From Anaeramoeba ignava BMAN (taxonomy: Eukaryota; Protista; Anaeramoebae), in NCBI GenBank assembly GCA_028826165.1, contig JAPDFW010000133.1, forward strand, positions 62,001 through 126,000: a DNA stretch of 64,000 nucleotides. The letters run 5' to 3'. Positions 5,499 through 52,629 of this stretch are shown piece after piece (within the stretch, counting starts at the first letter, position 1; each line of letters opens with the position of its first letter). Below the pieces are notes generated by a model. That model did no database searches. It was not told the origin of the DNA and saw only the letters and a program-made list of their open reading frames with translations. The position numbers and the translations under genes are program-made.

Positions 5499-8312
5499 TT
5501 ATTTTCTTTCAATTGAAAAAAATAATGAATTTTTTGGAATTGATTTCACTCTTTTTCTGAAATCTCGAAATGAACGACGAGTTTGACAAAGAAATCCAAC
5601 AGATAAACAAGGATCAAGTTGTGAAAATTTAATTCTTGGAAGAAATGGTGGTTTATATGAATTTGTTGGAAATTGAAAATCGGAATTTAACATTCCATTC
5701 ACTTTTGTTTGAACTTGATGTGGATCCAAAAAGAATAAGTTTTCTTCTATTTATATTTAAATTTATAATTATATTTATATTTTAATTTGATTTTGAATTT
5801 GATTTTGAATTTATATTTATATTTATATTTATATTTATATTATATTTATATTTGAATTTATATTTATATTTATATTTATATTTATATTTATATTTATATT
5901 TATATTTGAATTTAAATTTATATTTATATTTATATTTATGATTTGAATTTATATTTGAATTTATATTTATATTTATATTTATATTTATATTTATATTTGA
6001 ATTTGTATTTGAATTTCAATTCACCTTGATAACCAAAAAAATAAAGTCCTGAATTTTTATAACCTCCAATAAATCCAACTGATTGAGGAAAATGAAACAT
6101 TTGTTTAATAGCATCAAAATAAATTGGATTAATTTCATCTAACCCTAATCTTACTGGAATAAATAATAATAATGAAGTCCATTTTTTTCTTTTTTTCTTT
6201 TTTGGTTTTTGTTTATCTTTTTCATTTTCATTTTCATTTTCATTTTCATTTTCATTTTCATTTTCATTTTCATTTTCATTTTCATTTTCATTTTGATTTC
6301 ATATTTATATTTATATTTTGATTCATATTTATATTTATATTTTCATTTTCATTTTCATTTTCATTTTCATTTATATTTATATTTTCATTTTGGTTTTTAT
6401 TTTCATTTTTATTTTCATTTTGAATTTCATTTTGATTTTGATTTTGATTTTCATTTAGATTCATATTTTCATTTATATTTTGATTCATATTTATATTTTG
6501 ATTTTCATTTTCATTTATATTTTGATTTTGATTTTCATTATTGATATTTTCTTTATTGGTATTTTTGGTTGTTTTTTCTGAATTTTGATTCATTTCAATT
6601 AAAAAAAAATTTTCGTTTTGGATAGAGAAAGAGTATTCTAACTTATTAGAAGATGAATTATCTTGAGGAACATTCTTTTTAGAAGGATCAAAAAGACATT
6701 CAGAATAAATATCTTTTATTTTAACTGAAGTATCCATTGCAACAACAACTTTAAGATATTTTGAGTGTTTCAAACTAACTAATTTTCTATTTCATTTTTT
6801 TTTTTGTCTTGTTATTTTTCCTGATTTTCTTTTCTTTCTTTTTTTATTTACTTAATAATTTGTACAATCATCGTTGGTGAATACCATTCACTAATTTGCA
6901 TCCCCATTTCAACCCCTAATTCAGATATCTTATGTATTGAATATGGTGCTTCTTTTTCATCAGCAAAAAATGATATTATCTTAAATTTTAATTTTATAAA
7001 TTAATTTGAATTTGAATTTTAATTATTTTAATTTTTATTTTAATTTTTATTTTAATTTGAATTTTTTATCCGATTTTAATTTTAATTTTAATTTTAATTT
7101 TGATTTTAATTTTAATTTTTATTTTAATTCTAATTTTAATTTTAATTTTAATTTTAATTTTAATTTTAATTTTAATTTTTAATTTTAAATTTTAATTTTT
7201 ATTTTTAATTTTAATTTTAATTTTAATTTTTAATTTTAATCAAAAATTTTAAATTTAAAATTTTTAATTTTTATCCGATTTTAATTTTTATTTTAATTTT
7301 AATTTTTAATTTTAATTTTATAAATTAATTTGAATTTTTATCCGATTTTAATTTTAATTTTAAATTTTTATTTTAATTTTAATTTTGATTTTCTTTTTTG
7401 ATTTTTAATTTTTAATTTTAATTTTAATTTTTATTTTAATTTCAATTTTAATTTTTAATTTTAATTTAAATTTTAATTTTAATTTTAATTTTAATTTTAA
7501 TTTTAATTTTAAATTAAACAATTTTTATCCGATTTTAATTTTAAATTTTAATTATATAATTTTAATTTTAATTTTAATTTTAATTTGAATTTTAATTTTA
7601 ATTTTTTAAATTAATTTGAATTTGAATTTTAATTTTAATTTTAATTTTAATTTTAATTTTAATTTTAAATTTTAATTTTGATTTTAAATTTTATTTCAAT
7701 TTTAATTTTTTCAAGTTGTTGAAGCTTTAAAATAATTAGTGTAAATCTAATTATAATATAAATGAGCTGATTTAAAAATAAATTGAAAATTTACTCTATG
7801 AAAAATTTTGTTTTGTTCATCTGTTGCTTCTTGAAGTCTAAAATCTAAAAAAAATGATGAAAAAAAAATAAAAATAAAAAATAAAAAAATAAAACTAAAA
7901 GTTGATCAAAGAAAAAAATTACTTCTCCCTAAAAATAAAACAGACAAAGTGTTTGCAAGAATCATCTGACCAGTTCTGTACATGCAACCCCAGCCAGAAT
8001 CGGATGTATGACCAGATAACGATTCAAAATTTTTTCTATAAGAAATCCAAATTTTTGAATTAAAATCAGAATAAAAATCTTTCCAAATTAAAAGATGAAG
8101 TTGCTTTTTGGATTTATTTTGTTGTTTTGTTTGCTCTTTTGTGTCTGGTTTGTATTCTTTCCCTCCCATAACATGAATTGTTGATGATGTTGGTATTCCT
8201 TTGTTTCTTTCTTTTGAAAAATTTTTTGATTTTTTTTTTAATTTTTTTTTTTTAATTTTTTTGATTGTTTTTTTTTACTAAATTTTTGAAATGCATTATA
8301 AATTGATGACAT
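5499..8312 (-). CDS. ATG4: Cysteine protease ATG4; exons 8312-8279, 8210-7923, 7844-7795, 6979-6852, 6786-6025, 5746-5499
   Basis: WISYRKNF, catalytic SDSGWGCMYRTGQM, APYSIH, EWYSPT, IPVRLG, PQSVGFIGG, LDPH, LDPC. One apparent 1-nt frameshift at ~6290 inside an N/E/Q low-complexity insert. Confidence 0.93.
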
Positions 8313-8574
8313 TTTGTTTTTTATTTTTGTTTTTATTATTGCTTTTTATTTTTTTTTAAATAAATAAATAATAATAAAAATAATTTTTCAAAAGCAAAAA
8401 AATGGAAAAAAATGGAAAAAAGAAATCCTAAAAAAAATTTTTTCATTTTAAGTTGTTTTTGTTTTTTGAACTTAATTTGAATTCCCTTTTTGTTTTTATT
8501 TTTTTCTTAATCAAATCTTTTCTAATTTTTTTATTAATAAAATCTAAATCAAAAATGTTAATTTCAAAGAAAAA

Positions 8575-9040
8575 AAATTAATTAAAAATATTTAATAAAA
8601 TTATATTAAAAATATTAATAATTTTAAATTATTATTTATTAATAAAATTATTTAAAATTATATTTAAAAATAAATTATAAATAAATTATAATAAATTATT
8701 ATTAAAAATATAAATATAAAATTAATTAAAAATATTTAATAAAAATATATTAAAATATTAATAATTTTAAATTAATATTTATTAATAAAATTATCTAAAA
8801 TTATATTTAAAAATAAATTATAAATAAATTATAATAAATTATTATTAAAAATATAAATAAAAAATTAATTAAAAATATTTAATAAAAATATATTAAAAAT
8901 ATTAATAATTTTAAATTAATATTTATTAATAAAATTATATAAAATTAGATTTAAAAATAAATTATAAATAAATTATAATAAATTATTATTTAAAATATAA
9001 ATAAAAAATTAATTAAAAATATTTAATAAAAATAAATTAA
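8575..9040. repeat. Short tandem array of a ~145 bp unit, ~3 copies
   Basis: AAAATAAATTATAAATAAATTATAATAAATTATTATT recurs at ~8667, 8810, 8954. Confidence 0.8.
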
Positions 9041-10574: not shown

Positions 10575-13500
10575 TTAAATTTGAAATTCATCACCAAATT
10601 TTTGATGAACTAATTCCAAAATTTCCTGTTTTTCAATCGCAATTTTTTCAATCTTTTTTTGAAGCTCATTAATTTGTTTTGTTAAAGCATCATTTCTTTG
10701 TTCCAATTCTTTTCTCAATTCAATATCATATTTCAAAGTTCTTTTCAAGAGATAAAATTTCAGCTTTGATTCCCTTATGTTTTTGAGAACTGGATCCTTT
10801 TCTTGGAGGAACATAGTCTCTTGTCATTTCAACATAAGAAGAAGGAATCAAACCCTCTTTTCCTGAAACAACCGATTTTGCAAACCACCAACCACCTTCT
10901 TTTTCATCTTCTTCACCTATTTTTTTGGAAATTATTTCGAGAATATCTCCTTCATCGAATTCGAGTTCATCTTCCCTTTCTGCTTTGAATGCAAAATTTG
11001 CTTTTGCATAAATATCTGGAATATAATTTTTAGGTTTTTTCTGTTTTTCATTTCATTTCATTTCATGTTAATGTTTTATTTTTGGAAAATTTTTTCATTT
11101 ATTTTTTTTTTTACAAGAAATAGAAATTCGAATTCTTGAAATAATATCAAGCAAATCGAATATTGTTGTTGTGTTTCTTCGACTTTTTTACGGAGAATTA
11201 AAGGCCCAATAAACATTGCGAGATTTGATAGAGTCATTTTATTATGGCTTGATGCACCTGAAACCTTGTTCATATGCTGACAAAGTAATTTCAGTGATTC
11301 AAAGTTGGGTTTTGGAAGTGAATCGACTAATGAATTCAAAAACTCCATTTTTTCCCATAAAATAGAAAATCCTTTTCAAAGTTTTTCATTTTGAATTAAT
11401 TTGTGTTATTTTTATTTTGAATAAGAAATTAAAACAAACCATCTGCTTTGATAAAATCGTCATATAAACTGTTTGGAATCAAAGGTTCGCCAAGTTCTCT
11501 CAGATAAAGTTTAACAATTTCTGCTGTATCATGAGGTGATTTAGTCACACTTTCAATTTCAAGATCATCAGCTGAATTTTTTGATTTTTTTATTTTTGGA
11601 AATTTCATGTTAGGAGTTTATTTTTGAATATTTTATTCATTTTTAAAATACTTTGGTCAAAAAATTCTTTCAATTTAGCAACATTTTCTGAGGTTCCCAT
11701 TTTTCTGTAAATTCCTTCAACATTAATCCCATTTTTTTCAATAAAGTCAAAGCATTTGACTAATATTCTTGGTACTTCATGTTGTCTTCCACCTCGATTT
11801 AAAGCATAACTTAATGGATAAGTGAATATTGGAGTAGAATCTTCTTCTTTCTAAATGATATTTTTGTTTTGATAAATTGAATTATATTTAGATTTTTTTT
11901 TTAATTTACTTTAATTTGATTTTGATCTTGTCTAAATTTGACTTTTCTAACAAGAGTAAAACTTGCGTTTTGAATATCATCAATATTTTGGTTTGTAATT
12001 GATTTATTTCTATCAAGTGGATCTAAATTTCAAGTTTTGAAAATTTTCAATATAATTTTTTATTTTTTAATTTCCAATTTTCAATTTTCAATTACGATTT
12101 CCATGAAATAAACTAAAATCATAAAAATTTTCTTCTCCAAATTCTCTTGTAATTTTAGGAAGTTGTTGAGCAAGAGAAACACCTTCAAGAATTTCAATAT
12201 TTTTATCTTGTTTTTGATATTTAACATTAATAAACAAAGCGATTCTTTGTCTAAATTCGATTGATTCCTTTTTTTATATAAATAAATATATAAATAAATA
12301 TATAATTAAATATATATATAAATATATAAATAATTAAATATATAAATAAATATATAAATAAATAAATTTATAAATAAATTTATAAATAAATTTATAATTA
12401 AATAAATATATAAATAAATTTATAAATAAATATATAAATAAATATAAATAAATATATAAAATATAAATAAAATAAATAAATAAATATAAAAAAAATAAAT
12501 AAATAAATATATAAATAAATTTGTGTAAATAAATATATAAAATAAATTTAAAATATATAAATAAATAAATTAAATATATAATAAATTTATAAATTTGTAA
12601 TTAAATATATAATTAAATTTATAAATAAATTTGTAATTAAATTTATAAATAAATTTGTAATTAAAAAATAAATATATAAATAAATATATAATTAAATTTG
12701 TAATTAAAATAAATTTATAAATTAAATTTATAATTAAAATATATAATATAAATAAATTTATAAAATAAATATATAATTAAATAAATTAATATATAAATTA
12801 ATACATAAATATAAATAAATTTATAAATAAAATTTATAAATAAATATATAAATAAATTTATAAATAAAATAAATATATATAAATAAAATATATAATTTGT
12901 AAATAAATATATAAATAAATTTGTAATTAAATATATAAATAAATTTATAAATAAATATATAATTAAATATATAAATAAATATATAATTAAAAATAAATTT
13001 AAATAAATTTATAAATAAATTTATAAATAAATATATAAAAATAAATTAAATAAACAAAAAATAAATAAATATAAATAAAAATATAAATAAAATATATAAA
13101 TAAATAAATAAATAAATATATAAATAAATTTATAAATAAATATATAAATAAATATATAAATAAAATATAAATAAATTTAACAAAATAAATAAATTTATAA
13201 ATAAATATATAAATAAATATATATAAATAAATATATAAATTTAAAATTATAAATAAATATATAAATAAATATATAAATTTATATAAAATAAATATATAAA
13301 TAAATATATAAATAAATAATATAAATAAAAACAAATAAAATATATAAAATAAATATATAAATAAAATAAATAAATAAAAATATATAATAAAATAAAAATA
13401 TAAAATATATATATAAATAAACAAATATATAAATAAATATAATAAATAAATAAATAAATATAAAATAAATTTATAAATAAAATATAAAAAAACAAATAAA

Positions 13501-15220
13501 TAAATATAAATAAATATATATAAAAAAAACATAAAATAAAAATAATAAAATATATAAAATAAAAATATATAAATATATAAAATAAATAAATAAATATATA
13601 TAAAAAAATAAAAAAATAAATATATAAACAAAATATATAAAATAAAATAAATAAATAAATAAAATAAATATATAAATAAAATAAATAAATAAATAAATAA
13701 ATAAATATATAAAATATACAACAAATATATAAATAAATAACAAATAAATATAAATAAAATATAAATAAAATAAATAAATACATAAATAAAATATTAAAAA
13801 ACAAATATAAATAATATAAAAAATAACAAAACATATATAAAAATATAAATAAATATTATAAATAAATAATAAAATATATAAATAAATAAAAAATAAACAA
13901 AAATATAAATAAATATATAAACAATAAATATAAAATAAACAAAAATAAATAAATAAATAAATAAATAAAAATATAAAAAAATATAAATAAACATATAAAC
14001 AAATAATAAAAAATATAAAATAAAATAAAATAAATAAATAAAAATAATAAAATAAAAATATAAATAAAATATATAAAATAAATATATAAAATAAATTTAT
14101 AAATATATAAATAAATATATAAATAAATATATAAATAAATATATAAATAAATATATAAATAAATATATAAATAAATTTATAAATAAATAATATAAAAATA
14201 TAAATAAATTTATAAATAAATTTATAAATATATAAATAAATATATAAATAAAAATAAATTTATAAAAATAAATATAAATAAATATATAAATAAATATATA
14301 AATAAATTTATAAATAAATATATAAATAAATTTATAATTAAATAAATTTATAAATAAATTTATATATATAAATAAATATATTAAATAAATATAAATAAAA
14401 TAAATAAATAAAATAATTAATATAAATAAATATAAATAAAAATAAATATATAAAAAATAAAATAAATAAATATAAATAAATATAAATAAATAAATAAATA
14501 TATAAATAAAAATAAATATATAAATAAATATATAAATAAATAAATATAAATAAATTTATATAAAAATAAATATATAAATAAATTTATAAATAAATAAAAA
14601 TATATATAAATAAATAATAAATAAATATATAAATAAATATATAAATAAATTTTAAATATATAAATAAATATATAAATAAATTTATAATTAAATTTGTAAT
14701 TAAATTTATAAATAAATATATATAAATAATTAAATTTGTAATTAAATTTATAAATAAATATATAAATAAATTTGTAAATAAATATATAAATAAATATATA
14801 ATTAAATTTATAATTAAATTTATAATTAAATATATAATTAAATATATAATTAAATATATAAATAAATTTGTAATTAAATTTGTAAATAAATTTGTAATTA
14901 AATTTGGAAAAAAATTTCTAAAGCGTTTTTTTTTTGCAATTTCATTATTTGTAAATAAAAAATTTTGCAAATACTTGTTTCCAAAGTTCATAACTCATTA
15001 AAGTTCTATCTTCTTCTAACCAAAAACCATTATCAGAAGTACAATAAAGTCCATAATCTTCAAATCGATTCATATCTAATCCATTTATTTTAAAAATTCT
15101 TTCTTTAATTTCTCGAACAAGAGCAACTGGTGAAGAATCCATAGTTTGTGTTGATTGATGAAATGGATAAACAATATGAAGTAATAAAGTTGCTGCCATT
15201 TTTTTTTCTTGAGAATCCAT
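10575..15220 (-). CDS. Multi-exon RhoGAP: talin-like F0/F1 ubiquitin-fold N-terminus, RhoGAP, SH3, coiled coil
   Basis: Exons 15220-14975, 12267-12096, 12022-11910, then RhoGAP exons (VPRILVKC, EGIYRK, VKLYLRELGEPLIP, NKMTLSNLAMFIGP). The last exon from 11040 encodes an SH3 (AKANFAFKAEREDELEFDEGD...GWW...GLIPSSYV). Apparent +1 frameshift at ~10742 before the coiled coil. Confidence 0.88.
12275..14900. repeat. Low-complexity TAAA/TATA satellite (~12-bp units) in the 2.7-kb first intron of the RhoGAP
   Basis: ATAAATATATAA / ATAAATTTATAA variants between the donor at 14974 and the acceptor at 12268. Confidence 0.9.
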
Positions 15221-15401: not shown

Positions 15402-15474
15402 GCTTTCTTAGCTCAGCCGGTAGAGCGCTTGTCTTGTAAACAAGAGGTCACTGGTTCGATTCCAGTAGAAAGCA
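15402..15474 (+). tRNA. tRNA-Thr (anticodon TGT)
   Basis: 73 nt; acceptor stem GCTTTCT/AGAAAGC, D-arm GCTC/GAGC, anticodon arm CTTGT-CTTGTAA-ACAAG, GGTTCGATTCC T-arm, followed by a T-run terminator. Confidence 0.97.
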
Positions 15475-20084: not shown

Positions 20085-23000
20085 ATGGATGTTGATTGGT
20101 GTATTGAGAAACTAACAAAAAACCCACCTGAAGTACTTCCTGAACAAATTGTGAAAGAAATTTGTGATAAAATTAAAGAGTTGTTGATTTATGAATCAAA
20201 TGTAGCTGTTGTCAAAACTCCTGTTTCAGTTGTTGGCGATATTCATGGGTATTTTTACTTGATTTCCTTTATGAAATTATTTACTTATAATTTCTTAATT
20301 AAAAAAAAAAGCAAATCTATTTAAAAAATCTATTTAAAAAATCTATTTAAAAAATGAATTTATAAAATTATTTATAAAATCTATTTATTAAATTAATTAT
20401 AAAATTATTTATAAAAATTTATTTATTAAAATTATTTATAAAATTATTTATAAAAATTTAATTATTTATAAAATATTTATAAAATTATTTATAAAAAATT
20501 AAAATTATAAAAATTTATAAAATTATTTATAAAATTATTTATAAAATTAATTATAAAATTAAATATAAAATTATTTATAAAATTATTTATAAAATTATTT
20601 ATAAAATTAAATATAAAATTATTTATAAAATTATTTATAAAATTATTTATAAAATTATTTATAAAATTATTTATTTATAAAATTATTTTATAAAAAAAAT
20701 TATAAAATTAATTATAAAATTATTTATAAAATTATTTATAAAATTATTTATAAAATTATTTATAAAATTATTTATAAATTTATTTATAAAATTATTTATA
20801 AAAATTATTTATAAAATTATTTATAAAATTATTTATAAAATTATTTATAAAATTATTTATAAAATTAATTTATAAAATTATTTATAAAATTATTTATAAA
20901 TTATTTATAAAATTATTTATAAAATTATTTTAAAATTATTTATAAAAATTATATTTATAAAAATTTATAAAATTATTTTAAAATTAATTATTAAATTATT
21001 TATAAAATTATTTATAAAATTAAATTAAATATAAAATTATTTATAAAATTATTTATAAAATTATTTATAAAATTATTTATAAAATTAAATATAAAATTAT
21101 TTATAAAATTATTTATAAAATTATTTATAAAATTATTTATAAAATTATTTATAAAATTATTAAAATTTATAAAAATTTATAAAATTATTTATAAAATTAT
21201 TTATTAAATTACTTATAAAATTATTTATAAAATTATTTATAAAATTATTTATAAAATTATTTATTTATAAAATTAATTATAAAATTAAATATATTTATAA
21301 AATTATTTATAAAATTATTTATAAAATTATTTATAAAATTATTTATAAAATTATTTATAAAATTATTTATAAAATTATTTATAAAATTATTTATAAAATT
21401 ATTTATAAAAATTATATTTATAAAATTAATTATAAAATTATTTATAAAATGAATTATAAAATTATTTATAAAATTATTTATAAAATTATTTATAAAATTA
21501 TTTATAAAATTATTTATAAATATAAAATTATTTATAAAATTAATTATAAAATTAATTATAAAATGAATTATAAAAAATTATAAAATGAATTATAAAATTA
21601 TTTATAAAATTATATATAAAATTATTTATAAATTAAATTATATAAAATTATTTATAAATTTATTTATAAAATTATATATAAAATTATTCATAAAATTATT
21701 TATAAAATTATTTATAAAATTATTTATAAAATTATTTATAAAATTATTTATAAAATTATTTATAAAATTATTTATAAAATTATTTATAAAATTATTTATA
21801 AAATTTATTTATAAAATTAAATATAAAATTATTTATAAAATTATTTATTAAATTAAATATTTATAAAATTAATTATAAAATTATTTATAAAATTAATTAT
21901 AAAATTATTTATAAAATTATTTATAAAATTATTTATAAAATTAAATTATTTATAAAATTATTTATAAAAATTAAATATAAAATTATTTATAAAATTATTT
22001 ATAAAATTATTTATAAAATTATTTATAAAATTATTTATAAAATTATTTATAAAATTATTTATAAAATTAATTAATAAAATTAATTATAAAATTATTTATA
22101 AAATTATTTATAAAATTATTTATAAAATTATTTATAAAATTATTTATAAAATTATAAAATTATAAAATTATTTATAAAATTATTTATAAAATTATTTATA
22201 AAATTATTTATAAAATTATTTATAAAATTATATATAAAATTATTTATAAAATTATTTATAAAATTATTTATATAAAATTAAATATAAAATTATTTATAAA
22301 ATTATTTATAAAATTATTTATAAAATTATTTATTAAAATTATTTATAAAATTATTTATTAAAATTATTTATAAAATTATTTATAAAATTATTTATAAAAT
22401 TATTTATAAAATTATTTATAAAAATTATTTATAAAATTAAATTATAAAATTATTTATAAAATTATTTTATAAAATTATTTATATAAAAAATTTTAAAATT
22501 ATTTATAAAATTATTTATAAAATTATTTATAAAATTATATTTATAAAATTATTTATAAAATTATTTATTAAAATTAATTATTATTTATAAAATTAATTAT
22601 AAAATTATTTATAAAATTAATTATAAAATTATTTATAAAATTATTTATAAAATTATTTATAAAATTATTTATAAAATTATTTATAAAATTATTTATAAAA
22701 TTATTTATAAAATTATTTATAAAATTATTTATAAAATTATTTATAAAATTATTTATAAAATGAATTATAAAATGAATTATAAAATTATTTAGACAATATT
22801 ATGATTTAATGGAAATGTTCAAAGTTGGTGGTGAGTGTCCTGATACAAATTATCTTTTTTTAGGAAATTATGTTGATCGAGGATATTATAGGTTTATATT
22901 ATTAAATTAATTAAAATTAAAATTAAAATTAAAATTAAAATTACGATAAATATTTTAGTGTTGAAACTCTATCTCTTCTTGCTTGTTTAAAGATTCGTTA

Positions 23001-24195
23001 TCCATCAAGAATAACTTTATTAAGAGGAAATCATGAATCAAGAGCCGTTACACAAGTAAATTTCATGTTAAAAAAAATTTTAAAATGTCTTGTTGAAACA
23101 AAAAATTTTTATATTTTAAAAAATTTTGAAAATTAGGTTTATGGATTTTATGGTGAATGTTTAAGAAAATATGGAAACACGAATGTTTGGAAGTATTTTA
23201 CTGAAATGTTTGATTATCTTCAAATTGCTGCATTAATTGATTCAAAAATATTTTGTGTTCATGCTGGACTTTCTCCTTCAATTTCAACAATAGATCAAGT
23301 AATTATTTTCAATAATTAAAATTAAAATTAAAATTAAAATTAAAATTAAAATTAAATTTAAAATAATTAAAATTAAAATTCATTTATAAAATCAAAATTA
23401 AAATTAAAATTATAATTAAAATTAAAATTAATTTTTAAAATTAAAATTAAAATTAAAGATTCAGTTCTTGATAAATTTCAAAATCAAAAATTAAAATTAT
23501 AATTAAAATGAAAAATATAAAATTAAAAATAAAATTAAAATTAAAGATTCGGTTAATTAAAATTAAAATTTTTATAAAATTAAAATTAAAATTAAAATTA
23601 AAATTAAAATTAAACTGAAAATCAAAATTAAAATATTAAAATTAAAATTAAATTTAAAATTAAAATTAAAATTAAAATTAAATTTAAAATTAAAATTAAA
23701 ATTTAAATTAAAATTAAAATTATAATTAAAATTAAAATTAAAATTAAAATTAAAATTAAAATTAAAATTAAAATTAAAATTAATATAAAAATTAAAATTA
23801 AAATTAAAATTAAAATTAAAATTAAAATTTAAATTAAAATTAAAATTAAAATTAAATTTAAAATTAAAAGAGGGCCAGGATATCTTTTTGGACAAGATAC
23901 AGTTAACAAATTTATTCAAGGTAACAATCTAAGTCTAATAGTAAGATCGCACCAACTATGTTTAGACGGACATCAAATCATATTTTCTCGAAAATTATCA
24001 ACAATATGGTCTGCACCAAATTTCTGTTATCGATGTGGAAATGTCGCAACAATTTTGGAAGTTTATAACGAATCTGATAAAGAATCTGATCCAATTTTTA
24101 ACTTTAATTACAACACTTATACTGCTGCTCCTGATAGTGAAAGAATCTTCCCAACTCTTGAAACTGCTAAGGATATTCCAGACTATTTTCAATAA
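20085..24195 (+). CDS. PP2A-family (PPG1/PP4-like) Ser/Thr phosphatase catalytic subunit, divergent; exons 20085-20248, 22793-22891, 22959-23055, 23137-23298, [garbled ~23459], ~23871-24195
   Basis: [56 protein letters not shown], tail PDYFQ*. Confidence 0.9.
20330..22790. repeat. 12-bp satellite (AAAATTATTTAT)n in phosphatase intron 1
   Basis: Regular 12-bp period. Confidence 0.95.
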
Positions 24196-32046: not shown

Positions 32047-35205
<3,159 letters not shown>

Positions 35206-46087: not shown

Positions 46088-47872
46088 TTAATTATTAAAT
46101 TTGTTAATTAATAAATCAAATAAATTTGGATATGTTTGATTTAATTGAAAATAATCAATTCCAATTTTAATTTCATTAATTATTTCTTGTGTAATTTGAA
46201 TATCATCTTTAATTTGATTTGAATAAATCCAATATTCAAATATTTGAAATGATTTATTACTTAATTCACTATAATCTGTAACTTTATTAGATTTATCATT
46301 TGTTACAGATAAAAACATTCCTCGATATAATTCACTTCTCATTATTAATATTAATTTAGGAAATTTATATTGTTTTTCTTTTCTTTCAATTATAAAATCT
46401 TTTTCATTTTCATTTTCATTTTCATTTAAATAAATTCTTTTAATTGTTTCTTCAATTTTTTCATTTAAATTTATAATTTCTTTAATTTCAGAATATAATT
46501 TTGGATTTATTTTTTTGTTTGAATAAATCATTTCAAATATTTGATTTGATTCTTTAATTGATTTTTTTGAAATAATTTCTTGAAGTTTTTCAATTTCATT
46601 TTGATTTTGTTTTAATCTATATTTCAATATTAATTTATGAGCTTCAATTATTTCTCCATTTTTGGTTTTAAATGAAATATTACAAAATTCTTTTCTTTCA
46701 AATAGTTTTATCAAATCTTCTTCAATATTGGAAAAAGAAGAAGGAGAATAATAAAGAAATGATTTGTAATATCCACAAGAAATATGATAATTAGAAATAT
46801 TTTCATTAAATCTTAATTTAGGAAGTTCAATTTGAATTGGAATTAATTGATCTTTTGTATTTCCAGTTCCTAATTGACCATCAGAATTACTTCCAAATAC
46901 AATTAATTTTGAATTAGAAGTTAAAATCAAAGTATGAGCATTTCCAACAGAAAAATCAATAATAATATCATTTTCAAATAAAGATGATTTGATTTCAGTA
47001 AATTCATAAGTATTGTAATATTCTTTTTTGCCAAGTCCATTCCGGCGATGATTTCCACATGAATAAAGTTTTCTTTTTGTATTTTCATTTTCATTTTCAT
47101 TTTCAATCAACATTATTGAAAAAATATATCCAGATTGAATATCAATTATTTTGCCTTTTGGAATATTTTGGATTTTGGTTAATTTTTGGATTTCTGTTTC
47201 TTCTTTTCTTGATTCTCCTAATCCAATTTGACCAAAATAATTAAATCCGCATCCAAATAATTCTTGATTTGAATTTAAAAGAAAAACATGAGCTGAAGTA
47301 TTTCCTGAAAATATTTTAGAAACATTTTTCATCATTAAAATTGGTTTTTTTGTTTCTTTAAGTGTTTTAGAATCAAAACCAAGTTGACCAAATTTATTTA
47401 AACCAATTCCATAAACATTTTGATTTGAAGTTAACAAGTAAATTGAATCGTATCCAGAAACAATATCTTGAATTATTCTATCATTTTTATCTTCAATTAA
47501 TGATGAAATATTGATAAATTCATTTTGAATTATTTGGATTAATATCTTTCTTCCTTTGGCAAATACATTTCCTTCTTTTGTTAAAATAGCTTCATTATCA
47601 TAACCAACAGTTACTTTTTGAATATTTTCATCAATTTGGATTTTTTCAGGATTTTGTTTTGAATCATTTTCATTTAAATATTCTATTGCTTTTCCATTTT
47701 CAAAAAGGAAAATTGTTGAATATCTTCCTGATGAAATTTGTTTAATTTGTTTTTCATTTTCATTTTCATTTTCATTTTCAAATTTAAATTGAATTGGTTT
47801 TTTTATTAAATATGATTTATTTTTGATAAGTTTTGGTTTTTCATTTTCACCAAAAAATAAACAATCATTCAT
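46088..47872 (-). CDS. RCC1-repeat plus BTB-like protein, intronless
   Basis: VYGIGLNKFGQLG, GCGFNYFGQIG, SVGNAHTLIL..FGSNSDGQLG; BTB-like AHKLILKYR and RSELYRGMF. Likely ATG at 47872 (MNDCLFFG). Confidence 0.9.
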   Translation of the reverse strand: MNDCLFFGENEKPKLIKNKSYLIKKPIQFKFENENENENEKQIKQISSGRYSTIFLFENGKAIEYLNENDSKQNPEKIQIDENIQKVTVGYDNEAILTKEGNVFAKGRKILIQIIQNEFINISSLIEDKNDRIIQDIVSGYDSIYLLTSNQNVYGIGLNKFGQLGFDSKTLKETKKPILMMKNVSKIFSGNTSAHVFLLNSNQELFGCGFNYFGQIGLGESRKEETEIQKLTKIQNIPKGKIIDIQSGYIFSIMLIENENENENTKRKLYSCGNHRRNGLGKKEYYNTYEFTEIKSSLFENDIIIDFSVGNAHTLILTSNSKLIVFGSNSDGQLGTGNTKDQLIPIQIELPKLRFNENISNYHISCGYYKSFLYYSPSSFSNIEEDLIKLFERKEFCNISFKTKNGEIIEAHKLILKYRLKQNQNEIEKLQEIISKKSIKESNQIFEMIYSNKKINPKLYSEIKEIINLNEKIEETIKRIYLNENENENEKDFIIERKEKQYKFPKLILIMRSELYRGMFLSVTNDKSNKVTDYSELSNKSFQIFEYWIYSNQIKDDIQITQEIINEIKIGIDYFQLNQTYPNLFDLLINKFNN

Positions 47873-48126
47873 TTTTGAAAAAAAAAATGAAAAATGAAAA
47901 ATGAATTTTTTGATTTTAATTTTAATTTTAATTTTAAATTTGATTTTTATTTTAATTTTAATTTTGATTTTCATTTTGATTTTAATTTTAATTTTAATTT
48001 TAATTTTAATTTTAATTTTAATTTTAATTTTAATTATAATTTTAATTCTAATTTTAATTTTGATTTTGATTTTAATTTTAATTATTAATTTTAATTTTAA
48101 TTTTGATTTTAATTTTCATTTTAATT

Positions 48127-51100
48127 TTAATTTTCATCATTTTCATCATTTTCATCATTTTTATCATTTTTATCATTTTCATCATTTTTATCATTTTCAT
48201 CATTTTTATCATTTTCATCACTTTTATCATTTTCATCATTTTCATCATTTTCATCATTTTCATCATTTTCATCATTTTTATCACTTTTATCATTTTCATC
48301 ATTTTTATCATTTTCATCATTTTCATCATTTTCACTTTCACTTTCATAATTAAATAAAGTTAAACTTTTTGGATTTTGAACCAAATTATCTTTTTTTGGA
48401 ATAGACTTTCTTTGTTTAATTTGAAAATTAACAGGAAGTTTTTGAGCAGATCTTTTTAATTCACTTTTTCTAATTAATTGACGAAAAATAGAAGTTTTAT
48501 TTTCTTGATTATCTTGAATTTTTCTAACTTTTCCAAAATGAATATTTGCAAGAATTTTTTCCATTTCATCTTCAAAAGCTTTTCCTAAATCTTTTTCTTT
48601 TTGTTCGAATAATTCAACAATTTGTTTGTGTTCTAATTGATTATATTCTTGGTTTATTGCTCGAATTTCATCAAGAAGATCTAAAGTATCCATTTCTTTT
48701 TTTGATTCTTTTGTTCTATTTTCAAGCATTGTCATTACATCTCCTTCTGCTTCTTTTTCTTCTTCTTCTCTTCTTTCTTCAATTACTTGATGTTCCTATT
48801 TTAATTTTTTATCCGATTTTAATTTTAATTTTTAATTTTAATTTTAATTTTAATTTTAATTTTTAATTTTAATTTTAATTTTAATTTTAATTTTAATTTT
48901 AATTTTAATTTTAATTTTAATTTTAATTTTATAAATAATTTTTAATTTTAATTTTAATTTTATAAATAATTTTAATTTTAATTTTAATTTTATTTTTAAT
49001 TATAAATTTAATTTTAATTTTAATTTTTAATTTTAATTTGATTTAATTACTTTCCAAGGTTCAAAACCTCTTGTTGCACCAAATTCACAAACATAATCTG
49101 AATTTTTTGGATCTGTTTTAATTGTGATTTCACTTGCACATCGGCAACATCGGATATAAAAACGGAAAATTTTAATTCCTAAATAAGATTCACCAGTAAC
49201 AGTTTCTTTTCTGGCATTAAATTTCTTTCCAATTCCAAGATATTCACCACAAGTTTTGCAACAGATACTCATTGGAAGCATCATTCGCACTTTTATTTGC
49301 TTGTGTGGATCTTTTAGTTTTGCATGCGAAAGTATTCGAGGATTAAAATCTGGCTGTTTTATTTTAAATTAAATTTATTTAATAAATTGTTTTTTGGTTA
49401 GTTTTGAATATTAAATTTAGTTGATATTTTTTTTTGGTTTTAAGTTTAAAGGAAATTCCTAAATGTATAATTTTTATTGATTTAATTATAAATATAATTA
49501 TAAATTTCATTATAAATATAATTACAAATATAATTATTAATTTAATTATAAATTTTATTATAAATATAATTATAAATTTAATTATAAATATTATTATAAA
49601 TATAATTATAAAGAAAATTATAAATTTAATTATAAATTTAATTATAAATTCAATTATAAATTTAATTATAAATATAATTATAAATATAATTATAAATATA
49701 ATTATAAATTTAATTATAAATTTAATTTTAAATTTAATTATATATTTCATTATAAATATAATTATAAATTTAATTATAAATATAATTATAAATATAATTA
49801 TAAATATAAATATAAATTTCATTATAAATATAATTATAAATATAATTATAAATTTAATTATAAATTTAATTTTAAATTTAATTACAAATTTAATTATAAA
49901 TTTAATTATAAATTTAATTATAAATATAATTATATATTTCATTATATTTTTAATTATAAATTTAATTATATATTTCATTATAAATATAATTATAAATTTA
50001 ATTATAAATTTAATTATAAATATAATTATATATTTAATTATAAATTTAATTATAAATATAATTATATATTTAATTATAAATTTAATTATAAATTTAATTA
50101 TAAATTTAATTATAAATATAATTATATATTTCATTATAAATATAATTATAAATTTAATTATAAATTTAATTATAAATATAATTATATATTTAATTATAAA
50201 TTTAATTATAAATATAATTATATATTTAATTATAAATATAATTATATATTTAATTATAAATTTAATTATAAATATAATTATAAATTTAATTATAAATTTA
50301 ATTATAAATTTAATTATAAATATAATTATAAATATAATTATAAATATAATTATAAATTTAATTATAAATTTAATTATAAATATAATTATAAATTTAATTA
50401 TAAATTTAATTATAAATATAATTATAAATTTAATTATAAATTTAATTATAAATAAAATTATAAATTTAATTATAAATTTAATTATAAATTTAATTATAAA
50501 TTTAATTATAAATTTAATTATAAATATAATTATAAATATAATTATAAATATAATTATAAATTTAATTATAAATTTAATTATAAATATAATTATAAATTTA
50601 ATTATAAATATAATTATATATTTCATTATAAATATAATTATAAATTTTAATTATAAATATAATAAATTATAAATATAATTATAAATTTAATTATAAATTT
50701 AATTATAAATATAATTATAAATTTAATTATAAATTTAATTATAAATTTAATTATAAATTTAATTACAAATTTAATTATAAATTTAATTATAAATTTAATT
50801 ACAAATTTAATTATAAATTTAATTATAAATATAATTATAAATTTAATTATAAATATAATTATAAATTTAATTATAAATTTAATTATAAATATAATTATAA
50901 ATATAATTATAAATTTAATTACAAATTTAATTATAAATTTAATTACAAATATAATTATAAATTTAATTATAAATATAATTATAAATATAATTGTAAATTT
51001 AATTATAAATTTAATTATAAATAAAATTATAAATTTAATTATAAATAAAATTATAAATTTAATTATAAATTTAATTATAAATATAATTATAAAAATTAAT

Positions 51101-52117
51101 TATAAATATAATTATAAATATAATTATAAAAATTAATTATAAATATAATTATAAATATAATTATAAATATAATTATAAATATAATTATAAATTTAATTAT
51201 AAATTTAATTATAAATTTAATTATAAATTTAATTATAAATATAATTACAAATATAATTATTAATTTAATTATAAATATAATTATAAAGAAAAATAATTAA
51301 TTTAATTATAAATTTAATTACAAATTTAATTATAAATTTAATTATAAATTTAATTTTAAATATAATTATAAATTTAATTATAAATTGAATTATAAATATA
51401 ATTATAAATTTAATTATAAATTTAATTATAAATATAATTATAAATATAATTATAAATATAATTATAAATTTAATTATAAATATAATTATAAATTTAATTA
51501 TAAATATAATTATAAATTTAATTATAAATATAATTATAAATTTAATTATTAATTTAATTATAAATTTAATTATTAATTTAATTATAAAATTTAATTATAA
51601 AATTATTATAAATATAATTATAAATATAATTATAAATTTAATTATAAATATAATTATAAATTTAATTATAAATATAAAATTATAAATTTAATTATAAATA
51701 TAATTATTAATTTAATTATAAATTTAATTATAAATTTAATTATAAATATTATTATAAATTTAATTATAAAATTAATTATAAATATAATTATAAATATAAT
51801 TATAAATTTAATTATAAATTTAATTATAAATTTAATTACAAATATAATTATAAATTTAATTATAAATTTAATTATAAATTTAATTATAAATTTCATTTGT
51901 AAAAATAAATGAACGATAAGTGATGCAAAAAAAAAGCATTACCATTTCATTTCTAAAAGAAGTTTTAATACCATTTATACATTCAGGAATTTAATTTAAA
52001 CAAATTTCTTTAAGAATTTGTGCAATTATATATTTATAAAAAAAAAAAAGAGATTTTTAATATTTTTAAGAAATGACGTACAGGATAATATTTTTGAATA
52101 ACTTTTCTTTCAGCCAT
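48127..52117 (-). CDS. YJU2: Splicing factor YJU2 (CCDC94/Cwc16); exons 52117-52082, 49353-49051, 48795-48127
   Basis: Spliced N-terminus MAERKVIQKYYP|PDFNP, VRMMLPMSICCKTCGEY, GKKFNARKE, CCRC..EITIKTDPKNSDY, LENRTKESKKEM. Confidence 0.95.
49480..51890. repeat. 12-bp satellite (TTATAAATTTAA / TTATAAATATAA)n in YJU2 intron 1
   Basis: Regular 12-bp period. Confidence 0.95.
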
Positions 52118-52242: not shown

Positions 52243-52629
52243 ATGGATAATCTTCCACAAGACGCAAGAGTTATTGAACAAATTTTACATTCAATGGGAA
52301 TTGAAGAATATGATCCACAAGTTTTACCACAATTACTTGAATTTATACAAAAATACACATCAGAAGTACTTGAAAAAGCACAAAAATATGCACAACATGC
52401 AAAAAGAAATCAAATTGAAGAAAGTGATGTGACACTTGCTATTACTAATCAAGTTGCTTATTCATTTCAAAAACCTCCTTCAAGAAAATTACTTGCAGAT
52501 TTTGCAAAAGCAAGAAATGCTGTACCTTTTCCTCAAATTAGATTTAAATATGGTGTTCATTTACCAACTGAAGAATATTCATTAACGAATGCTAATTATC
52601 AAATTGATGAAAAATATCAAGAAAAATAA
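52243..52629 (+). CDS. TAF9: TFIID/SAGA subunit TAF9
   Basis: PQDARVIEQILHSMGIEEYDPQV..QLLEF histone fold, SFQKPPSR, RNAVP, GVHLP..LTNANY. Confidence 0.95.
   Translation: MDNLPQDARVIEQILHSMGIEEYDPQVLPQLLEFIQKYTSEVLEKAQKYAQHAKRNQIEESDVTLAITNQVAYSFQKPPSRKLLADFAKARNAVPFPQIRFKYGVHLPTEEYSLTNANYQIDEKYQEK

Follow-up and report, generated by a model that had tools for sequence, protein, structure and literature searches.

The YJU2 gene of the anaerobic amoeba Anaeramoeba ignava BMAN raises the question of how the two ends of a very long, repeat-filled intron are brought together for splicing. The gene lies in a 64,000-nt stretch of contig JAPDFW010000133.1 (positions 62,001 to 126,000 of the forward strand, assembly GCA_028826165.1), which we call the window and whose positions are used throughout. 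The genome of this species is 80.65% A+T overall and its 32,108 introns are 91.9% A+T, with a modal length of 76 nt and a maximum of 4,168 nt (PMC11550330); mean intron G+C is 8% (PMC11550330 supplement). The first intron of YJU2 measures 2,728 nt, most of it a 12-mer satellite, and the original prediction held that an inverted repeat on either side of this satellite could loop it out of the transcript as an RNA bridge. We find that the repeat is a genuine, single-copy 27-bp inverted repeat, and that it probably forms a stem in the pre-mRNA. The features of the intron, in the order of transcription, are as follows.

49354-52081, minus strand: YJU2 intron 1, 2,728 nt, GT-AG, by direct reading; its removal is required to join exon 1 to exon 2.
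52076-52081, minus strand: 5' splice site, GTACGT, by direct reading.
51975-52001, minus strand: 5' arm of the stem, intron nt 81-107, from reading and a fold of the full-length intron.
51907-51952, minus strand: local hairpin of 16 bp with a U9 loop, -8.7 kcal/mol, predicted only and without an Rfam match.
49480-51897, unstranded: 12-mer satellite, the part that would be looped out; 2,418 nt, about 200 copies, 90% match, 0.9% G+C.
49444-49470, minus strand: 3' arm of the stem, intron nt 2612-2638, from reading and the full-length fold.
49397-49402, minus strand: consensus branch site ACTAAC, intron nt 2680-2685, with the branch A about 44 nt from the acceptor.
49354-49356, minus strand: 3' splice site, CAG, by direct reading.

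Direct reading gave the same count for the arms as had been claimed, namely 24 reverse-complementary positions out of 27, with a G-U pair on the minus strand at one of the other three. As transcribed RNA the arms thus form 24 Watson-Crick pairs, one G-U pair and two adjacent U-C mismatches, that is, 25 of 27 positions paired; six of the pairs are G/C, and no homopolymer exceeds 3 nt. Between the donor and the 5' arm lie 80 nt, and between the 3' arm and the acceptor 90 nt, values that the original prediction had put at about 80 and 90 nt, and ACTAAC follows the 3' arm after 41 nt, just outside the stem as described there. The arms, likewise confirmed as unique sequence, bracket the whole 2,418-nt satellite, and the unique flanks in which they lie (184 and 126 nt) have a G+C content of 19% and 14%, compared with the species intron mean of 8%. 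The local hairpin sits in the unique 77 nt separating the 5' arm from the satellite. Also within the 5' unique flank, positions 51937-51962 (minus strand) hold a pyrimidine-rich AG, 10 nt and then GUAAUG, which resembles a frame-shifting micro-exon or decoy splice sites. The 3' flank carries a diverged 42-nt tandem duplication (49368-49408 and 49410-49450, 71% identity), one copy of which includes ACTAAC while the other includes a degenerate version of it overlapping the outer edge of the 3' arm.

The repeat is non-random. When the two unique flanks were shuffled by dinucleotides, one of 3000 shuffles matched at 24 or more of 27 positions and one of 2000 reached the composition-weighted gapped score, so that comparable matches are rare rather than frequent in the shuffled controls proposed with the original prediction. 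Real sequence provided a harder null than shuffling (0.25-0.34% versus 0.03-0.05%): non-cognate pairs of real satellite flanks reached the score in 3 of 1200 cases in the window and in 16 of 4704 over the whole contig, part of this tail being genuinely duplicated genes. The tail is swollen by two inverted copies of one set of transposase-like open reading frames, which share long identical peptide stretches and lie about 50 kb apart (L006 ~6000-7600 and L011 ~7000-9000, corresponding to ~6-7.6 kb and 57-59 kb of the contig, C134). Duplex energies were computed in windows, plain RNAduplex on whole 180-nt flanks being uninformative, with long loopy AU duplexes scoring well everywhere. Between the donor-side and the branch-side flank, the most stable 30x30 RNA duplex has -27.0 kcal/mol, a 5-8 sigma outlier against both shuffles (-10.1 +/- 2.1, 0 of 150 as low) and real non-cognate flanks (-12.7 +/- 2.9, 0 of 128).

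These controls bear directly on pure coincidence in a window of 85% A+T. AT-rich, low-complexity DNA inflates complementarity, as the fatter real-sequence nulls illustrate, and with 758 genome windows scanned some 1-in-1000 events will surface. However, the arms are not low-complexity, their energy lies beyond both nulls, and YJU2 intron 1 is the sole outlier among the 49 satellite arrays of the contig, with a score of 31.0 against 24.9 for the next best; we therefore regard coincidence as improbable.

A second possible source is a transposon: the arms could be the terminal inverted repeats of a miniature inverted-repeat transposable element (MITE), or of an Introner-type element that created the intron. 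The intron is lineage-specific, being absent from 10 of 10 other eukaryotic YJU2 loci, recent intron gain has been reported for A. ignava (PMC10710043), and other protists have Introners that carry terminal repeats (PMC9860276, PMC12130899). YJU2 intron 1 shares with such Introner- or MITE-derived introns the combination of lineage specificity and an inverted repeat, but differs from them in being single-copy, in lacking a target-site duplication and in carrying its arms 80-90 nt inside the splice sites instead of at the intron ends. Across the 42.8-Mb genome, the 27-mer at up to 3 mismatches matched only the two arms, the 18-nt core had no further match at 0-1 mismatch, and both intron flanks were unique. 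At 2 mismatches the 18-mer core gave 44 matches compared with 19 for the control, an excess that comes partly from unrelated repeat families, and a weak match of the 3' flank on contig C93 proved spurious, arising from a 5-mer satellite. No target-site duplication adjoins the arms, the bases immediately outside them sharing no direct repeat longer than 2 nt on direct reading. Because they are single-copy and lack such a duplication, the arms are not those of a multicopy MITE, a possibility raised alongside the original prediction, and the transposon reading is largely refuted and hardly credible. Furthermore, Rfam 15 covariance models run on both unique flanks returned nothing below E = 6, and hence no snoRNA or other known RNA.

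Folding predicts that the stem would probably form in the pre-mRNA even with the 2.4-kb satellite present. The minimum free energy (MFE) fold of the complete 2,728-nt intron retains it, and the partition function of the full-length intron assigns pair probabilities of 0.91-1.0 to an 18-bp inner helix and of 0.6-0.9 to a 7-bp outer helix. The arm-arm duplex (-25.1 kcal/mol) is thermodynamically dominant, either arm reaching only about -7 kcal/mol against the whole satellite; since the arms hold 6 G/C pairs and the satellite has 0.9% G+C, the satellite is unable to compete for them. In the ensemble the 5' arm has only weak local pairings. On pairing, the donor and the branch site, 2,679 nt apart along the linear transcript, would be separated by about 121 nt and the helix, and the single-stranded path from donor to acceptor would measure 80 + 90 = 170 nt. 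The strong shortening envisaged in the original prediction is thus borne out by the model, while its figure of an effective intron of about 200 nt needs adjustment to a single-stranded path of about 170 nt, which is still twice the 76-nt mode.

The explanation that we prefer, and hold tentatively, is that a stem already present in a shorter intron helps to join the donor and the branch site. An earlier intron of about 310 nt would have carried the 27-bp stem with about 90 nt in its loop, and there the 12-mer satellite would later have expanded to 2.4 kb. By pairing in the pre-mRNA, the arms would confine the satellite to one giant loop, the donor-to-ACTAAC distance would be cut to about 121 nt and one helix, and the resulting bridge could aid the spliceosome in pairing the ends of an intron whose length is 35 times the mode. 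Formation in the cell, better splicing and selective retention of the stem are what we infer from these models.

Two sets of known introns provide the precedent. Zipper stems occur in long Saccharomyces introns, among them those of RPS17B and RPL7A/B (Rangan et al. 2025, PMC12350175). Like them, the YJU2 helix joins a segment downstream of the 5' splice site with one upstream of the branch site and would shorten the distance between donor and branch site, and its sequence is species-specific, without conservation. Zipper stems are defined as stable helices of at least 6 bp that form with confidence; here, in silico only, the helix has 25 pairs, -25.1 kcal/mol and a probability of 0.6-1.0. The long introns of Giardia, Spironucleus and Trichomonas also carry stem-loops proposed to bring the splice junctions close (Hudson et al. 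2019, PMC6679479), so that the appeal of the original prediction to intron base-pairing in metamonads such as Giardia was correct. The broad lineage (Metamonada) is shared with A. ignava, as is the proposal of internal pairing for splice-junction proximity, and the base-paired halves of the trans-spliced introns of Giardia are a related metamonad system.

The original prediction had gone on to suggest autoregulation, that is, a switch in which the level of YJU2 controls formation or use of the stem and hence splicing of its own intron. Nothing was found in favour of this beyond the coincidence that the host gene encodes a splicing factor. No alternative, mutually exclusive structure stood out, the local pairings of the 5' arm being weak, and no binding motif was found. 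YJU2 is not known to bind pre-mRNA in a sequence-specific manner, and it works within the activated spliceosome. Zipper-stem alternatives do serve autoregulation in ribosomal-protein genes of yeast (10.1101/2025.03.14.643126), yet for YJU2 we consider such a switch highly improbable.

Several observations weigh against a splicing role for the stem, starting with its geometry. Yeast zipper stems have a defined linker of 42-85 nt, whereas that of YJU2 is 80 + 41 = 121 nt, and the range is approached only by counting two outer 9-bp AU helices of the MFE fold, which would cut the path to about 70 nt and which are at chance level (1663 of 2000 shuffles). The loops of the yeast stems span a few hundred nt; that of YJU2 spans 2.5 kb and consists of satellite. 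The long metamonad introns, once folded, have as much single-stranded sequence as the short introns of the same organism (25-45 nt), whereas the unpaired path in YJU2 would be 170 nt against the 76-nt mode. On this comparison the YJU2 stem would work on the same principle as the yeast and metamonad stems, but strict membership fails on spacing in both.

Nor does the device recur. Zipper stems are present in roughly one third or more of long yeast introns, and stem-loops in nearly all long introns of the metamonads in question, whereas in A. ignava a stem was seen in one intron of the eight examined. Recurrence was assessed on the 136-kb contig C134, 47% of which is tandem repeat. Nearly every spacer and many introns of this contig hold a satellite of 0.3-3.4 kb with its own unit (6, 12, 13, 16, 23 or 140-164 nt). 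At least seven introns other than YJU2 intron 1 are satellite-filled, in genes for PP2A-like (two introns), Rab, CK1, SMC and talin/RhoGAP proteins and in YJU2 itself (intron 2).

20255-22790, plus strand: satellite-filled intron.
23300-23870, plus strand: satellite-filled intron.
32484-33645, minus strand: satellite-filled intron.
12275-14903, minus strand: satellite-filled intron.
48796-49050, minus strand: YJU2 intron 2, 255 nt, nearly all 6-mer satellite, without a stem and without ACTAAC.
L006 9066-9977, minus strand (contig outside the window): satellite-filled intron.
L010 2789-4188, minus strand (contig outside the window): satellite-filled intron.

In these seven introns the satellite begins 0-85 nt after the donor and stops 0-40 nt before the acceptor. 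Flank repeats are absent from all of them (scores of 13-21, the null median being 15.9), and in none can an ACTAAC branch site be recognised, in keeping with the remark in the original prediction that no such motif was seen near other acceptors; in a PP2A-like intron the repeat itself provides the 3' splice region. Over all 49 arrays of the contig, the scores of cognate flanks equal those of non-cognate ones (Mann-Whitney p = 0.55). The scan for end-proximal repeats that had been called for, run here on the 49 satellite arrays of the contig, singles out YJU2 intron 1 as an outlier but yields no excess over the null for the group. Since stem-less satellite introns exist here, in several of which the satellite reaches the splice signals, a bridge is not needed for splicing them, and the stem of YJU2 intron 1 is a single case and not a general device of this genome. 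The stem-less, satellite-saturated introns without a branch consensus are arguably the more intriguing and maybe the more rewarding question.

The same results bring forward a neutral reading, in which the repeat is the relic of a DNA-level hairpin, created by a template switch or quasi-palindrome during replication in the intron of about 310 nt, with the satellite later expanding in the loop and the arms free to pair but unselected. Perfect short inverted repeats and RNA hairpins have been documented to arise by template switching (PMC8794818, PMC5453318). The hairpins it generates are sharply bounded, near-perfect short inverted repeats in non-coding DNA (Monttinen and Loytynoja 2022, PMC8794818), and the YJU2 complementarity likewise ends sharply at 27 nt, with no leftover similarity beyond the arms. 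Template switching is an origin mechanism without a functional claim, and is compatible with a splicing role as well as with a neutral relic. The divergence of the arms (3 of 27 positions, 11%) is about that of the satellite copies (10%) and fits neutral decay equally well. In addition, a scan of the contig for inverted repeats within 5 kb found only 4 that score as high or higher; A/T homopolymer matches account for two of them, and a perfect 23/23 repeat (46236-46258 and 46522-46544) sits inside RCC1-BTB coding sequence (open reading frame 46088-47974, minus strand), which demonstrates that strong repeats can arise without a role in an intron. Comparable short-range repeats number about 1-3 per 72 kb of unique sequence on the contig. 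On the other side, the chance per intron is still about 0.1-1%, a neutral origin leaves unexplained why YJU2 intron 1 alone keeps long, G+C-richer unique flanks and a perfect ACTAAC, and, as weak evidence, one of the three differences between the arms is a G-U pair on the transcribed strand. With other satellite introns managing without a stem, the neutral relic is quite possible and is the chief competitor of our preferred reading.

The weighing of these readings depends mostly on the prior fraction of long A. ignava introns with functional stems, which the contig suggests to be small. The bridge of the original prediction is real and, on the folding models, probably RNA-forming, and the stem is one well-documented candidate, not a demonstrated mechanism: an extreme, unproven case of a known kind. 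The stronger version of our preferred reading, in which the stem is a selected clamp that keeps the intron spliceable after invasion by a 2.4-kb satellite, appears doubtful. If true, no other zipper-type stem would come close to the clamp in the size of the loop it excludes, Anaeramoeba would be directly shown to rely on folding for introns off the 76-nt norm, as its relatives among the diplomonads and parabasalids do, and the stem-less satellite introns of the same genome would offer a natural with/without comparison for spliceosomes facing kilobase-scale repeats. Even the weaker version, should the stem work, would bring the Anaeramoebae under the zipper-stem principle known from yeast, Giardia and Trichomonas, with a loop ten times larger than any described, and would provide one way for a genome that is about half tandem repeat to keep its genes spliced.

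Identification of the host gene rests on single exons, which were run individually against Pfam, by reference.

52082-52117, minus strand: YJU2 exon 1, ATG plus 11 codons with a phase-0 end, by direct reading.
49051-49353, minus strand: YJU2 exon 2, 101 codons, Pfam PF04502 (Saf4_Yju2), E = 1.4e-47.
48127-48795, minus strand: YJU2 exon 3 including the stop, Pfam PF04502 profile positions 107-307, E = 6.7e-6.
52243-52629, plus strand: TAF9-like gene (TFIID 31 kDa), divergent neighbour, Pfam PF02291, E = 8.9e-44.

Exon 2 covers positions 5-104 of the Saf4_Yju2 profile with 163.5 bits, compared with a curated cut-off of 27.8, and its protein is 60-71% identical to eukaryotic YJU2; exon 3 carries the profile onward, and the 12 residues encoded by exon 1 agree with the conserved N-terminus of YJU2 homologues. 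A metagenome scan with YJU2 returned 11 loci, all at 71% amino-acid identity or less, of which 10 reach the N-terminus. All ten read straight through the junction of exons 1 and 2 without an intron, which makes YJU2 intron 1 lineage-specific. No YJU2 sequence closer than 71% amino-acid identity was found by a word search with exon 2 or by the metagenome scan, and an exact-protein look-up with the neighbouring TAF9-like protein gave no match. The nearest sequenced relative has about 37% average amino-acid identity and is too distant for intron alignment (PMC11550330).

The TAF9-like start lies 125 nt from that of YJU2, an arrangement that invites a DNA-level reading: the arms could act as a pair of regulatory sites in the divergent YJU2/TAF9 promoter region, or the repeat could be a cruciform-prone palindrome that seeded the satellite. 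In favour of this, the 5' flank exceeds typical introns in G+C content and is found 240-270 bp upstream of the point where TAF9 starts. However, the other arm is 2.5 kb away beside the acceptor, the 48 other satellites of the contig arose without a flanking repeat, and the 18-mer core search revealed no recurring motif; an element of this kind is thus very improbable.

Finally, the C-terminus of YJU2 is encoded by a satellite as well, with 9-mer units (48130-48334, minus strand) that spell Asp-Glu-Asn (DEN) repeats, which swamped the word-based protein search made with exon 3. Elsewhere in the window, a tRNA gene at 15402-15474 (plus strand) is the sole Rfam match at gathering score.

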